Shown: one piece after another, positions 37,253-45,040 of the stretch
Position numbering within the stretch: the stretch's first letter is position 1
Layout: the number at the start of each line of letters is the position of its first letter
Assembly: GCA_020891255.1 (NCBI GenBank)
Contig: BQFW01000002.1
Coordinates: 3,038,001-3,102,000 of the forward strand
Reading direction: 5' to 3'
Source of the DNA: Entomortierella parvispora E1425
Lineage: Eukaryota; Fungi; Mortierellomycota
DNA length: 64,000 nt
Notes under the pieces: generated by a model
Told to the model about the DNA's origin: nothing
Databases searched by the model: none
What the model saw: the letters and a program-made list of their open reading frames with translations, nothing else
Translations under genes and position numbers: made by a program

Positions 37253-39615
37253 ATGACTCTGATCCCAGAATCAACCTCACCTTTGACACCGCCACCACTC
37301 TCAAGCCACGGCGAGAACATCGCTCCAAGTACCTCTCCTCCATATCCACTACTTGGCACCGGCACAACCTGTTGCCGTATCTGTCTAGACGATGATCCTC
37401 ACGGCCTCTACTCGCCGTGTCGTTGTAAAGGATCGATCAAGTTTGTACATAGTCATTGCCTAACTCGATGGTAAGACTATAAACACTGCCTTGCTATTCT
37501 TGAAGAGATCATCTCAGGAGGCAATTGGAACAAGAGAGGGTCAAGGCGGCCCAATGTGACCATGTGATAGCAACCGACTAAAGCGGAGCTGAGAACTTTC
37601 ATCTTTGGACTCCCGAGAGACGATTCGATCGGACGAACCTGGACCACCGACAATGAGAACAAAGAACCACAAAGTCTACCCTGGATTTGTCCCAAAAAGA
37701 CAGCCGTCCGTCCTTTGTTACCCCCTTGTGTGCACGGATGGGAGGTATTTTTATCTTGTTCTTTCGTCCAAGTGGATTGTCTTAACCTTTCGTGTGTTTC
37801 ATTTTGCGTTCATAGGAGAAAGAGTCTTATGGCTCATGGACGTGATGAGTCCGCAAACTCTTGCACCATGTGCGGCTTTAACTACGTTCTCAAGAAGCGT
37901 GCCCGGTTTTACGAACTGATCTCATATAGAGGTAAGCCCCAACTGCTCGAATTTTTACCCCTTTACCCCTCCCAGGTGGTCTTGACACAGGAAACAGGCT
38001 TACTCGAGCTCAGAAGCTGACATTATTGACAGCGAGTCAGTCCGAGAGAATGAGCGATCGAAGAAAAGAGGGGAGGAAGAGATGCACGCTCGCTGAGTGG
38101 TTGCGGTACCCCGCTGTGTTCACATGTGAACTTGGTTCTCCACAGAAGACCCAACTTTAATTTGTCTAATATTTTTCTTGTTCAATTTCCCCTCTTCTGT
38201 GCTGGCCGACAGGAATCCGGATTGCCATCACGGTGCTCGTGGTCCTGGTCATGCTCTTCCCCTCTGGATACCTGATGAAGGCCTGTGTCCTTCTCTCAGG
38301 CTACAACGACAGCCCGGATGTCACGCCCGTTGGGTACCTTCACACCCTCCGCCATCTCTCGACCAACATGGAGGACATGACTATCTTTCCTATCTGCAAT
38401 GCCAACAGCAACAGGAACCAGCGTATGAGACATGTGGCCCTCACACCCCCAAAATCGGTTTCGCCAATGGACGCTGTGCCGGAGAAGGACGCAACAGGAA
38501 AGGATACAAACACACCCATGGTCACCTCCAGCCCGATGGCCATGGCCACGCCAATGCACTTTGTGTCGATTTTCCCCGGACCCTTTGCCCCCCATATCTC
38601 CAACTCTAATATCCTTTCCACTGGTCATCATTCACAACGGGACCAACCTCAGGCCAGTCCATCTGAGAGCATTGGTCACCAGCAGCAACAGCAGCAACAG
38701 CAACAGCAACGGCAGCCAGGACAGGGCAACAATGGATCAGGAGAACCATCTGTACTTCAAAACTCCTGGGCATGGGTCTCTGCAGGGATCGATGTTGTGG
38801 GCTCGAGTCATTTGGCAAGCTTGTTGCTATACCCATTTATCAATGATCGGATTTGGTTCTTTTTGCTTTGCCGCCTTCAACATCTTCACCTAGGATTTTT
38901 CTTGTTGGGTTCTGCAAGCAATGTCTACATGGCATGTCAGATGCTATCAGATATGTACGATCTCGTAATGATGCCGTCCAACTCACATCAGCATCTCCAG
39001 CAGCCACATCTCCAACCGAGCCGTATCAAGAAGGTTTTCTTGGCGTTGACCTCAGTCTTTGTGATCTGGTTTTGGTTTTCTTACAATCTGATGGCCTTCC
39101 GAGTCTCGACGACAGAGGAAGAGTTCATGAGTGAGCTCCCTCTTTGGGCCCTGCGATGGATCAATGTGGGCGTGGCGATCGTGGATTTGAGTTATCGCAG
39201 AATCTATAACCGACTGGGTCGTCTGAAGGTCGAGGAAGAACTGTTGGATATCTCGGATGTGGAAAAAGTGGAGGAGATGCAGCAAAAAGCCTGGCTCCAT
39301 CAGCAACAACGGTTCTTGCAATATGGACAGGAACAAGGACAGTATCTTCTGGGACAGTTCAAGGCATTCGAGGTCAAGCAATCATTCTTGAACGGTGCCA
39401 ATGCAGCCGTCGACGCCGTGTCAGATGCCTACTCAAAGACCAATATTCCATCTTTCCCGCCAATCCCAACTTCCTTTGCATCGGCTGTCACTATGATGTC
39501 GACATCCACGTCTGCCTCTTCATCTTTTCCTTCGGATAGCGAACCGGACAACGACAAAGATTCTAGTAGACACTCTTCCTCGGAGCCGGTGGCAAGCGAC
39601 GAGCTATCAAGCTAA
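37253..39615 (+). CDS. RING-CH (RINGv/MARCH-type) membrane E3 ubiquitin ligase, multi-exon
   Basis: CRICLDDD..SPCRCKGSIKFVHSHCLTR-W..CTMC (C4HC3), spliced across an intron at about 37470-37815, followed by several TM segments. Confidence 0.85.
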
Positions 39616-39865
39616 ACAAAACAAAAAAAATCCTGCTTTTCACTGACCCCGTAACATAGTCAATGTGATCCATATACCTTAGACAGTCAAACGCTCCAGC
39701 CCATAAAAAAACACGCGTCGACTCTCTTTGCGTGATGTTGGATGTTGACATTGTTACAACACTGCTGGATCAACTTTATTTTTTCAAGGCGATCAAGGGA
39801 CCGAGGACGTCTCATTACCAAGCAGTCGTCAGTAGATAAGGGAGCTTTCAGCGTCAATCGAGAGT

Positions 39866-42702
39866 ATGGACTTGGATACGGTGCCCGCATCGTCTTCTCA
39901 TAACGATCTCAACGTTGTCACTCCTCAAATCGAAGGCATTCCCAAACAGATGCGACTCAGGAATGCCAAACAAAAGAAGTGGTCCCAATCACGGTAAGTA
40001 ACACTTGTCATCGCCGAGTTTTCTATGCCATTCCCTTCACTACTCGATTTACTTACGATCTGACCATATTCTCTTGTCTACCAAGGTTCAAGTCCAGAAC
40101 AGACAATCAACAGAGATACGCTGTTAGGACTATCACCATCTCGAACGACCCACTCGTCGATGAAAAAGAGCTTGCGAAAATGACTATAGCCAAACCTCGC
40201 CCAAAGCAAACGACATCAGCAGCTTCCGACGACGGATCGAGGCTGCTGTCAACACAATGGCTGAACCTCGTAGGTTTGTCGAGATCGTGATCCTTGACGA
40301 GCTGCTGCGGTCACAGATGAGGTGATGCCATATGCATTGGAGGATAATACCTTCAATGTGCTTGATCTAATTTTGGAAAAAGCAGCGGGAACTGCCATCG
40401 TCAAGCATCTCTTCTCGTTGATCCTCAATGGCCATATCCAGGAAATTGGTCCCAAGACCGTTAAGGAGTCCAAAGCGGCCAAGGACATAACGATAAATGC
40501 CTTTGAGCTCCTGAAGATCCTTCCTGGATTTGTGCCTGTAAACAAAGGGACACCATAAGCCTAGGACGACTGGCTGTTGACGCAGCAGCCGAAATCAGCA
40601 TGCAGTTGCGCAAGCATTTTAAGGGCATACATTTTACAGTTGGAGGAAGGGTACGTGGTACCTTTATATTTGTTTCGTTGGCTATGGTCGGTATTCAAAT
40701 ACTAACCTCAATCATTATTGTTAGATGAAAAGCTGTGTATGGGCCGAGAGTGATATCCCCCCTGACGCACTGAAGGACCCTAACGCTCAAGAAGCACAGG
40801 AGAGTGAGAAGGCAGATGTGAACGACGATATCAACCCTGTCGACAATGGCGCTGAGGAGGATGATGAGGATGGCGAGAACGAGAAAGTTAAGAGCGATTT
40901 GAATACGGGCATCTTCGACGTTGGTGGACGGAGGCTGCTCGGCTCCCCTTGCGTACGAGGCCCGTGTTCTGCCTCCGACACAAGTTCAAGGATCCTTTTA
41001 TCACTTTTGAAGAGCAGGCTCTCCATCAGATTCTGTGGGGAACGACAAAAAAGCACCCAAATCCTGTCTCGACTGTGGCCAGCAAAATCATGTCAGCAAA
41101 GGAAGCGTCAGTAGTTGCTGAGCAGAGACACGGGGAACTCATCAGAATTCTTTTTTACCGGGAGTGGAGATGAGGAAGTCGTCTTCAGCGAAGCAGACAC
41201 CCTACGGGCGACGGTCCACAACTATGGAATCCCTTGCTCAAAATCATGAGTTCTTCAGCTCCACGGTATTGCACGCGTACATCGATGCCAAATTCGCACA
41301 CATCGCCAAAGCAACGGAGTGCAAAGAAGAGGGCACAGTCTGCGAAGATACCCTTCCACCACTGCCAACAACATGTCTTCCAGATGATCCCAAACGGCGA
41401 CCACCACGTTTTGCTATAAGCAACATGCTTGCTACGAACGGGAAGGAGCTCCACGTCAACTGCTCCAACACCATGAAACCTTACCGGAGCAAGCACGCCT
41501 TTGTCCCCATCTATTGCATCGAGAATAGATTCCCCACTCTGCAGTCGATTTTTGACGAGTTCAGTGTGAGTTCGGTTGACGACATCGATGTGTGGGGAAT
41601 AGATCCAGGCAAAGTGAATACGGCGGCGTTCTACAGAATCTTCCGGGATAGCCTCGCTTCAATTTTTGACGACCCAGGAGGTCAGGGCCTGTCAGACATC
41701 ACTACAAGCAAACGGATTCTCCTTCAGGGCGTGGAGGCCAAGAATCCGGTTGTGAACCGCAAGTCCCTCTACCAACCCGTTTTTTCCCATTGTCAAAAGA
41801 TGGGGGAGCTCAAAAGCAGGTCAACTCACGTCAGTAAGGATGATCGTATACAGGGTGACCTTTGGGCTCGCCCGGAAGGTTCTATTCGCGAAGGAGGGGA
41901 TATTTTACCAAGTATCGGTGATATGAACTCTCTGGTTCCTCTCCAGCAGCACGAACTGACGGGGATCATTGATAGCCATGGAATAACTCTGCCGAGCATC
42001 AATGACATGCAGAACTTCTTGCCCACGCATCAGTACGAATCTGTTGAGGATGTAGAGACGTCGACTGTACGTTTCAGCCAAGTTCAACGACTCCTGCACG
42101 AGTTCTATGGATCCAAGAGGGTAAAGACAATGGAATGGGAGTTGAAAAAGGCGAAGAAGGCAGAGATAATCGACGCTATTCTCTTGCAGTGCACCTCTAA
42201 AACCTTGTTTTGCTATGCCAATGGTTCCTTCCACGCGGGCATCATTCTCCCCCTCCCCCCCCCCCCACGAAACATACAACTTTTTACACTAAGGGTAAGA
42301 TTTTTTCTTCTTTTTTCTTGATGCTTTCCCCGTTCTACAACAGACAGATATGCCTCTATTATTTTATGATGAATTTAGGCTGTTAGTGCAGGACACGTCG
42401 TTGTGTTGGTGGACGAGCACCTCACCTCCAACATGTGCCCTACCTACCTCGAGTCCGGCGACTCATGCAGACTTGCAAAATCCACAGTGAGGTCATGCGC
42501 ATGCTTGGTATGTGGCAGGTGGGTTCACAGGGACATAGTCGGTGCCCACAACATTGCTGCAGCTGGCGACGTTTGGATCAGGACGTTGACCAGACCGCTG
42601 GCCCTGCGCCGCAAGTCCACCACCCCAAGCCAAACAACCCAATCAAACACCTGCGCCGAAACCGCAGCCACCACTTATCCCGTGGCTATTTCAACAGTCT
42701 AA
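39866..42702 (+). pseudogene. Fanzor (eukaryotic TnpB/IS200-IS605-family RuvC nuclease) gene with three introns and about five frameshifts
   Basis: RuvC-I VWGIDPG (D at 41602), RuvC-II GHVVVLVDEHLTSNMCP (E at 42415), zinc-ribbon CACLVC, RuvC-III HRDIVGAHNI (D at 42532), C-terminal RPLAL and upstream ATNG (TDG-like). Introns 39994-40085, 40651-40724 and 42295-42378 are canonical and in phase. Confidence 0.85.
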
Positions 42703-42867
42703 GGGATGTCCTGTGTACAATAATAAACTCCCATTCCAATTGCTGTCAGTCAAAGGAGCAAATATGCCCTTTGCCGTTTATTTTCCTTAATGAAGGTGGT
42801 GAGAAACATTGAAACGCACAGGCAAGGAGTAAGGATTGGAGGTTAGGCGAAAATGGTGAAGTATGAT
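42703..42867 (+). ncRNA. Candidate Fanzor omegaRNA / element right-end region
   Basis: Lies immediately 3' of the Fanzor stop, where omegaRNAs are typically encoded. Contains hairpin CAAAGG-A-GCA-AATA-TGC-CCTTTG (42751-42773) and a small CCTT-AATG-AAGG stem (42785-42796). It also overlaps the VMA4 3' UTR on the other strand. Confidence 0.3.
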
Positions 42868-44330
42868 CTAGTTGAAGAACTTGCGGTTGGGGGAGGGACC
42901 GAACAACATGTTCCTAACATCAGGAAGCATCTATAGAATAAAAAAACGGGTGAGTATTGGATGATGAGCTCGATATCAGAACAGTCCCTACAGCTCTACA
43001 AACAATATATCGTACATCTTCCTCAAGGATAGAGAGACGAGCCTCTGGGGTATTGTTGCACTTGGTCTTTCCACCGTTTCCAGCCACGATGACACCTCCG
43101 GCACTATAAGCAGATAAAAATAAGAGTACTCAGCATACAGAACCAGAAATAGAAGTTAAAAGGAGCAACATTGAAATGGAGGTTAAATTGTACCTGTCGG
43201 CAGCGAGGTATTCATCCAAAATCACGACCTTGATCGCTGACTTGGTAGCCTCCTCATAACGAGCTTGGACAGAGGGCAAGAGACCCTCGACGACAGCCTT
43301 ATCAGCCTTGCGCAATTGAACAGTGACCTCGGGCTCCAAGAGACGGAAGAAAGCCTAGAACATATAAAGATCCAATTAGAATATCGTCTCTACATTTTGT
43401 GCCATAAAGTTATCACGGCACTTGTGGGAAAAGCAAGACGCACCTGAACCAGTGAATCGGCCAAGAACTTCTCGTAACGGGTCTTATCCTTGGAAACCTC
43501 CAAAAGCTGGTTCCTTGATTCAGCGAACAGATCGTCCAACATTTGCTGACGAGTCACCAACAGAGTCATGCGGGACTTGTTGATGTTGTTAGACTGAGCA
43601 CTAAAAAAATAGGAAGGACAGAGGTAGATGGGTCGGTCATCTGGGACAAAAAATATCGTCACGGGCAGCATCCTCAAGCAATCACCCCACTGGTGACTGC
43701 ATTGAATGATAATGGCGTGGCAAGATCAAATTTGAAGTGCTTTCTGTACATGCGACGTTGGACATCAGCTTGCTTGACCTTGCGCTGGAAGGCAGCGTCA
43801 ATATTGATCGATTCCTGACGAACAAGCTTGGCCTAAAGGTAACAATAAACGCGGGATCAGATCCCCAGTATCTCGGTTCGAATCGATTACCCTCTTTTCC
43901 ATGAGATCTGCTAACTGCTCCATCGTGCTTTGACTTTGCTCCTAACCTTCTCAATGTTGAACTCTTCGTCGGCCTAGCAGCAAACAAATTGTAGCAATTG
44001 TTAGTAGAGTCCTCTATCTCTCGGCATTAAGGTGCAGTTAGTGCAGTTTATAGGCTGCCGTTCAGGTTTGCCACATTTCGCGCATGCTCGTAGGGATACC
44101 TTGACTTTGATTTCTCTGGCCTTCTCGAGCGCCTCCTGCTTAATGAACGCGACCTATGACACAAAAGAAAAGGAGAATCAGCATGGAGGTCATTACGGAT
44201 CGAGGTCTGCTTCCGAGGACTAAATGTCATTCCGAGGAAAGGCTGGAACAATGGAGAGAGGATGCATCTGTACCATCTTTCTCATTTCAGAGACGACTTC
44301 GTCATCGTTCAGAGCTTTGTTGAATGACAT
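42868..44330 (-). CDS. VMA4: V-type H+-ATPase subunit E, multi-exon
   Basis: [53 protein letters not shown], with C-terminus LFGPSPNRKFFN*. The introns I checked are GT..AG and in phase. Confidence 0.96.
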
Positions 44331-45040
44331 GATTATGAATTGCGGGGTCTAATGCGGAGAAGGATTCGCTTTGGTCAGATAGAATTCAAGCACAAATGGA
44401 GAAGCAGCTGACGAGCAAAGGGGCAATGCATTCGAATGCAGGGCTCAATTTGTTCATTACAGGATGAAGAGTCGAGTGGGGTAAGGGAGTGAGACGAATG
44501 AACAAGGCGAATGCACTCCTCTTCGACTTTCATGCGATGCTCCTCCCTGTCGCGGTCACGCTTGGACTGTGCCTGGTCTTGACAGAGTGCCCCTAGTAGT
44601 CCAAACGTCACCTGTGCTTAAGGGGCGAGGCTCGTTTTCCTTTGTCTCTTGAACAGTGTGCGCGAAGATCCAGCCTCTTGCAAGCTGCTGGAGGACCTCC
44701 TGGTGGTCGCTGTGCTTGTTCGTGGAGCACCAGTATATCGAGAGGTCTTCGTAAAATGTCATCTTGGGGCACAGTGACTCGACGACCACGTTCAAAGAGT
44801 TGCACAGCCAACAACGAAGACAAGATCCGCCACGTGACGCGAATGCGGACAAAATCTCTCGCTGTCTTTCCTTCTTTGTCTCTGTCGCATGTTGCACCGT
44901 CTTCCTTCTACTGTACATTCATTCCCATTGGGTCCTTCCCACGGCCGACACCGACTAGACAAAACGTAGAGACAGAAGCTGCGAGAGACGACAACGGTTC
45001 CACCTAGTAACTTAGAGAACACTGCTTGGACAATTCGAGG

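Follow-up and report, generated by a model that had tools for sequence, protein, structure and literature searches.

The window analysed here is a stretch of 64,000 nucleotides from the fungus Entomortierella parvispora E1425 (assembly GCA_020891255.1, contig BQFW01000002.1, positions 3,038,001 to 3,102,000 of the forward strand), and its segment 39680-42708 is read here, with a probability of roughly 85%, as a decayed, front-less copy of a ∼5.2-kb mobile element of the Mortierellaceae. The full element would carry one spliced gene, in which a FEN1/EXO1-like nuclease is fused to a Fanzor1-like RuvC nuclease. Of this gene the copy appears to retain the linker between the two parts, a damaged REC/WED part, the RuvC and zinc-ribbon part and three ancestral introns, together with the authentic right end of the element, and it would have lost the FEN1-like domain and ∼100 further codons while gathering five frame breaks and damaging substitutions. 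An initial annotation, made from the letters of the window, had instead proposed an intact, intron-containing Fanzor RNA-guided nuclease gene at 39866-42702; as its sequence stands, the locus is a pseudogene fragment and not an intact intron-containing gene.

The identity of the nuclease is the part of that annotation that holds. The three RuvC motifs were checked codon by codon and lie in the order and at the codons given for them: GIDPG (RuvC-I) at 41596-41610 with its Asp codon at 41602, VDEHLTS (RuvC-II) at 42409-42429 with its Glu codon at 42415, and, after the zinc ribbon, HRDIVGAHNI (RuvC-III) at 42526-42555 with its Asp codon at 42532. Judged from the letters, the joint occurrence of the three is far above chance. 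In an alignment of 14 family sequences the RuvC-I Asp column is invariant, within a conserved V-W-G-x-D-P-G-E, and conservation extends to Y-G-N-G at the canonical RuvC-II position, D-E-x-L-T-S ∼39 residues past it, CPxC...CxCxxxC and R-D-x-x-G-A-H-N. The window has YANGSF at the canonical RuvC-II site, and its Glu follows ∼39 codons downstream. In published Fanzor proteins the active site is rearranged: the canonical RuvC-II position holds Gly or Pro, and an alternative Glu lies ∼45 residues downstream (PMC10530073). Since YGNG in the family, YANG in the window and the downstream Glu match this rearranged site, the D-E-D assignment at this locus is taken to be right. The Pfam domain Cas12f1-like_TNB (PF07282) matches 42403-42699 with E 3e-6 and 27.7 bits, which exceeds the curated threshold of 26.3. 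The 385-residue open reading frame (ORF) at 41164-42318 finds Mortierellaceae homologues at E 1e-122, represented by 66 clusters in a library of 1.8 billion proteins, and the region is closest to proteins of Mortierella, Dissophora, Haplosporangium and Benniella; the window itself is fungal in look (∼49% G+C and short GT..AG introns). The zinc-ribbon half-site that had been noticed is real: the second pair reads CACLVC (42496-42513), and the first, which is CPTC or CPRC in all homologues, reads CPTY here (42436-42447), leaving the copy short of the four Cys of the TNB/OrfB zinc ribbon even though PF07282 recognizes it. Assignment to the TnpB/Fanzor nucleases, with the residues of their triad, is borne out by the Pfam match, the fit to the rearranged site and the fold of a homologue, and the further proposal of an uncharacterised, lineage-specific subfamily is supported in the form of a Mortierellaceae-specific family.

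By sequence the family is far from any solved structure. A search of the PDB with the Fanzor half, either as a single sequence or as a 14-sequence profile, returned no TnpB, Fanzor or Cas12 chain, and P0009, an intact 463-residue homologue of the C-terminal half of the copy, was therefore modelled in place of the broken window protein. The AlphaFold 2 (AF2) model has a predicted local distance difference test score (pLDDT) of 85.4, and its best PDB matches in Foldseek are the fungal and algal Fanzor1 proteins SpuFz, PpFz and GtFz (E ∼1e-6, probability 1.0), at a template modelling (TM) score of ∼0.45 across ∼380 columns; Cas12j, Cas12f, Fanzor2 and TnpB come next. Fanzor1 takes ranks 1-5, 7 and 9 and mimivirus Fanzor2 rank 18, in what is a ranking of structures only. 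Structure prediction, which the initial annotation had named as a check, thus favours the TnpB/RuvC fold for this homologue.

The full-length Mortierellaceae relatives, with 1,166-1,246 residues and in one case a single frame of 1,377 codons, begin with a domain in which M-G-x-T-x-L, H-V-D-G-x-P-S-x-x-K, Q-A-D-T, T-x-D-S-D-L and T-x-N-D-Y recur; it is present in the full-length P0015, P0023, P0047, L001, L002 and L008. Pfam matches to this domain are near noise (XPG_I, E 0.21; 5_3_exonuc_N, E 0.14), and a PDB sequence search gives weak matches to RAD2, XPG, FEN1 and EXO1 (E 0.01-0.16). The fold search settles the question: for a model of P0015 residues 1-400 (pLDDT 65) all 50 of the top 50 PDB matches are EXO1, FEN1, Rad2/XPG or GEN1, the best at E 5e-6, and the domain is thus predicted to be FEN1/EXO1-like. 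The family is a fusion of a FEN1/EXO1-like nuclease to a Fanzor1-like nuclease, of which no description was found in the literature searched. No tblastn match to the FEN1-like domain was obtained in the 64 kb of the window, and the 4 kb ahead of the copy gave none even at E 50. The large N-terminal region of the initial annotation is therefore there, but as a mere remnant, from which the ∼460 FEN1/EXO1-like residues of the full-length relatives are absent.

Further members and pieces of the family were met in other contigs. Contig L002 (207-4502), like L003, L004 and L005 from the same four runs (SRR6256856-60), holds the FEN1-like and Fanzor parts in one frame of 1,377 codons; these contigs are without an intron at all three conserved positions and look like spliced transcripts. 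This frame is broken by a single TAG at the first Trp of the family's H-W-W, and the 463-residue ORF of P0009 is the tail that follows an in-frame TAG within one 1,377-codon frame. A second, partial Fanzor tail (CGVWLNRDSSGSHNL...) lies at L007:953-1048; the full-length P0015 gene follows ∼7.6 kb downstream on that contig. On the contig of the P0006 copy, beyond that copy and inverted, L010:5951-6673 carries the 5′ part of a further family member that resembles L001 731-1488. The gene model P0035 (752 residues) combines a RabGAP-TBC domain with a C-terminal Fanzor piece (weak TNB match) and was probably called as a chimera over an insertion beside a RabGAP gene.

Gene structure was read against L001, a full-length copy carried by a contig of a different Mortierellaceae sample. 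All three introns of the window copy stand at the L001 positions. The claim of three in-phase introns thus stands as to their existence and conservation, but not as to phase, as intron 3 alone has a length divisible by three. It is read through in the P0001 gene model and spliced in P0003 and P0009 (AQK/AV; slashes mark junctions). Upstream of intron 1, KKWSQSR/FKSRTD of the window aligns with P0015 near residue 460 and with KYKQWRQSQ/FKSRTD of L001, and the ATG at 39866 probably encodes a Met that was internal to the long ancestral protein. The stretch KQMRLRNAKQKKW, which had been called similar to a nuclear localization signal (NLS) near the N-terminus, is indeed basic, but it belongs to the inter-domain linker of the full-length relatives.

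Splicing does not join the ORFs into one frame, as had been claimed, because five further frame changes remain. Alignment by tblastn with five homologues places the blocks of homology along the window in frames 1, 0, 2, 1, (intron), 0, 2, 1, (intron), 1, and the breaks were located by frameshift-aware alignment and three-frame reading against P0010. At break 1 ∼100 codons are lost, and with them the conserved T-F-A-x-S-T-Q-T-x-G-S-x-x-G-C-x-R-R-A segment. At breaks 3-5 the homologous residues of L001 or P0010 abut on both sides, which rules out lineage-specific introns as the source of these frame changes. Within 42247-42294 (DNA compared with L001 5150-5204) a gain of seven nucleotides in a poly-C run and a loss of four near the donor site cancel in frame, and this double shift turns the conserved family helix ASPHEAFKAVFAQK into PLPPPPRNIQLFTLR. 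Substitutions against the family include CPTY for CPTC, DPGK for DPGE and YANG for YGNG, and ∼24 extra codons lie in frame around 41902-41985, in exon 3. A likeness of LPSIGDMNS to LPSINDMQN at 41902-42039 is seen at the protein level only; a tandem duplication at the DNA level was not supported there by Tandem Repeats Finder. Logan contigs of a sequencing run, X1, are the same as the window over 38721-42007 and 42107-44400, with 0 differences and 0 gaps, and the breaks can therefore not be put down to errors of the window's assembler. With five frame changes, a ∼100-codon deletion and a compensated double shift in place of one continuous spliced frame, the copy, as its sequence is read here, cannot make a working nuclease.

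Parts of this copy have nearer paralogues in the same genome, since X1 yields extra contigs that are 88-95% alike over 41849-42242 and 42440-42833. These raise the X1 word depth over the two intervals to ∼1.4-2x that of the rest.

The limits of the copy are provided by X5 and X6, two other strains under the same species label, whose flanks are ∼95% (X5) and <90% (X6) identical to the window and whose contigs are without the segment. In X5, 39668 is joined to 42734 through 36 letters, which align to window positions 39669-39679 and 42709-42733, and therefore the insertion is 39680-42708; the X6 contig likewise skips the segment. The right limit agrees with the point at which six family copies diverge and with 42707, where a paralogous contig parts from the window. 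On one side the insertion site is 65 nt past the stop of an ORF at 38233-39615 (+), and on the other the 3′ end of the V-type ATPase subunit E exons (43133-43677, −; Pfam vATP-synt_E) faces the insertion, so that the segment is, from the comparison of contigs, a polymorphic ∼3.0-kb insertion between two convergent genes. Because L001 478-5671 aligns to L008 116-5283 in one piece (78% identity, ending in GGGATA), the element is put at ∼5.2 kb. Concerning the left side, 39705-39736 recurs in a second X1 contig, in which the 30 letters ahead of the match align to 39676-39706 (25/30 paired positions identical, one gap), which hints that 39676-39736 may include the true left end of the element. A cross-species match was rejected, as the likeness of the left 200 nt of the copy to the left ends of L001 and L008 is no better than that of shuffles. 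A search of L001 and L006 for terminal inverted repeats found none. The left terminus at 39680-39695 (TTAGACAGTCAAACG) and the right sub-terminus at 42688-42702 (TCAACAGTCTAAGGG; TTGACAGCCGAAGGG in L001) have a common core, ACAG-Y-C-x-AA, which is direct rather than inverted and recalls the direct-orientation ends of the IS200/IS605 type; it may be chance. The upstream ORF encodes 460 residues with a poly-Gln run, has no Pfam match and is kept in strains X5 and X6. The insertion most likely took place after these strains split off, and the copy would either have been already shortened when full-length copies moved it in trans or have arrived whole and then eroded.

The right end is marked by a block common to six copies (L001, L003, L006, L008, L010 and the window), all of which differ beyond it, and the block is kept whether it is coding (L001, window) or lies in the 3′ untranslated region (L003). 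Its two hairpins are CTGCG-N7-CGCAG and, after it, a variable inner stem enclosed by the outer stem TATCCC/GGGATA; in the window the outer stem closes as TATCCC..GGGATG. Of five sequences that were folded, four, among them the window, are predicted to form the two hairpins, and the window does so despite ∼10 substitutions; L010 folds otherwise, with a z-score near zero. Paired cells amount to 94%, against 26-47% in slid controls, and a two-hairpin structure is thus plausible as a prediction. A search of 39600-42900 against Rfam gave no match. If TnpB and Fanzor are a guide, this block at the right end of the element most likely acts in end recognition and is a candidate omega-RNA scaffold region, in which case the guide would be read from the flank beyond 42708.

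Table 1. Features of the inserted copy (window coordinates; residues on either side of a slash adjoin a splice junction).
Feature	Position	Strand	Remarks
Whole inserted element copy	39680..42708	+	∼3.03 kb; absent from contigs of X5 and X6
Left-terminal stretch, possible left end	39676..39736	+	repeated elsewhere in the genome, on a second X1 contig
Linker remnant	39866..39993	+	basic inter-domain linker; includes KQMRLRNAKQKKW at 39944-39982
Intron 1	39994..40085	+	92 nt, GTAAGT..AAG, phase 2; position as in L001
Exon 2 remnant, REC/WED-like part	40086..40650	+	∼100 codons lost, three frame changes
Frame break 1	40210-40229	+	frame 1 to 0
Frame break 2	40308-40339	+	frame 0 to 2
Frame break 3	40553-40558	+	frame 2 to 1, TAA at 40556
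Intron 2	40651..40724	+	74 nt, GTACGT..TAG, phase 0; conserved, TVGGR/MKSCVW vs TIGQR/MLKCGW
Exon 3 remnant	40725..42294	+	two frame changes; RuvC-I GIDPGK 41596-41613, YANGSF 42214-42231
Frame break 4	about 40890-40895	+	frame 0 to 2
Frame break 5	about 41160-41167	+	frame 2 to 1
Intron 3	42295..42378	+	84 nt, GTAAGA..TAG; conserved, downstream junction /AVSAGHVVVLVDE
Last exon	42379..42702	+	Glu 42415, CPTY, CACLVC, Asp 42532, stop at 42700; PF07282 and L001/P0009 alignment
Right-end block, two hairpins	42651..42708	+	ends exactly at the insertion boundary

That 39866-42702 is an intact, large Fanzor1 gene for an active RNA-guided nuclease, as first annotated, is now scarcely credible. Its D, E and D residues do stand at the expected motifs, its three introns are conserved and its TNB domain scores above the Pfam cut-off, but the frame changes leave no room for introns, the ∼100-codon deletion takes away a conserved motif, the helix before intron 3 is scrambled, the zinc ribbon reads CPTY, the N-terminal domain of the family is absent, and a second assembly (X1) confirms the sequence. 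Hardly better placed is a reduced protein of ∼490 residues from the 3′ ORFs (Met at ∼41170 to 42702, spliced at 42295-42378) with some RuvC activity. With intron 3 removed, 41164-42321 and 42379-42702 are open in the same frame, all three catalytic residues fall in this 3′ part, and 463-residue ORFs like that of P0009 have been called in other species; yet such a protein would be without the upstream REC/WED region found in all full-length relatives, it would carry the scrambled PLPPPPRNIQLFTLR as well as CPTY, DPGK and YANG, and the P0009 ORF that could serve as its precedent is itself a tail left by an in-frame TAG, which together make it very unlikely. A dead protein gene whose right-end RNA (∼42550-42708 plus flank) is still transcribed, and guides FEN1-Fanzor proteins of intact paralogues, in trans, to the empty site, is improbable, if less so than either coding alternative: the two-hairpin block keeps its predicted fold in spite of the ∼10 substitutions and ends exactly at the boundary, but Rfam has no match, covariation is weak, and the scaffold upstream of the block would lie in decayed sequence.

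Several points weigh against the preferred reading of 39680-42708 as a decayed copy bounded by an authentic right end, or against parts of it. The left boundary is supported by a single paralogous contig and bears no detectable likeness to the left ends of copies in other species, and an internal deletion that kept both ends would look the same here as a simple 5′ truncation. The element may have been lost precisely from X5 and X6 instead of having been gained here. X1 possibly derives from the same sample as the window assembly, and its agreement checks the assembler, not the biology. For the right end, the omega-RNA reading draws on conservation and on folds that are predicted; covariation amounts to just two pairs in which both partners differ, a result equalled by 54 of 500 shuffles. 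A fuller version of the preferred reading, in which the copy is a non-autonomous deletion derivative that has both ends, was mobilized in trans by full-length elements once the strains had separated and ends in the omega-RNA scaffold of an undescribed Fanzor lineage, is put forward tentatively and is, on balance, doubtful.

Since the locus is not a usable nuclease gene, the screen for a target-adjacent motif (TAM) that had been proposed would fail with this copy. Its worth is that of a landmark for the FEN1-Fanzor family, in that it provides a pair of filled and empty sites and a precisely bounded, conserved right-end block: comparison with the element-free strains places the right terminus within a base or two, and the two-hairpin block at this terminus is conserved across species and coding status. 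For an intact paralogue, the block would by analogy indicate the candidate end of the guide RNA and the start of the guide. Since the strains under one species label diverged, the family has either moved or been lost. Were the deletion-derivative version true, comparison of the filled site with the empty site of X5 would give the exact target site, and the guide and TAM of the lineage would become directly predictable.

Among known systems, the fungal Fanzor1 proteins of Spizellomyces punctatus (SpuFz; 8GKH/9CEY) and Parasitella parasitica (PpFz; 9CF0) resemble P0009 in having a RuvC fold with a TNB/zinc-ribbon insert, and have in common with the family Gly at the canonical RuvC-II position with Glu downstream, introns, a basic NLS-like stretch and a transposon setting. 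They differ in that their identity to the family is merely 10-12%, full-length family members are ∼2x longer and possess the FEN1/EXO1-like N-terminal domain, and the window copy is a broken fragment. In bacterial TnpB of IS200/IS605 elements (ISDra2 TnpB, 8H1J) the gene for a RuvC D-E-D nuclease likewise reaches the right end, a structured block likewise lies across the stop codon or beyond it and reaches to the boundary in the manner of a right-end RNA scaffold, and terminal inverted repeats are likewise lacking, as in L001 and L006; the present family, however, is eukaryotic, spliced and much larger, with a rearranged Glu and no TnpA seen, and its omega-RNA is a candidate. Non-autonomous, internally deleted derivatives of DNA transposons are also shortened with an authentic right end, have a left-terminal stretch repeated in the genome and vary in presence between strains, whereas for the window copy the left end and the mobility in trans are putative. 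While the window copy is without the FEN1-like part, is shorter (∼3.0 kb against ∼5.2-7 kb) and has more lesions than the Mortierellaceae FEN1/EXO1-like-Fanzor fusion elements, these belong to the same family: homologues of its coding remnants carry the fusion, and the intron positions and right-end block are common to both.

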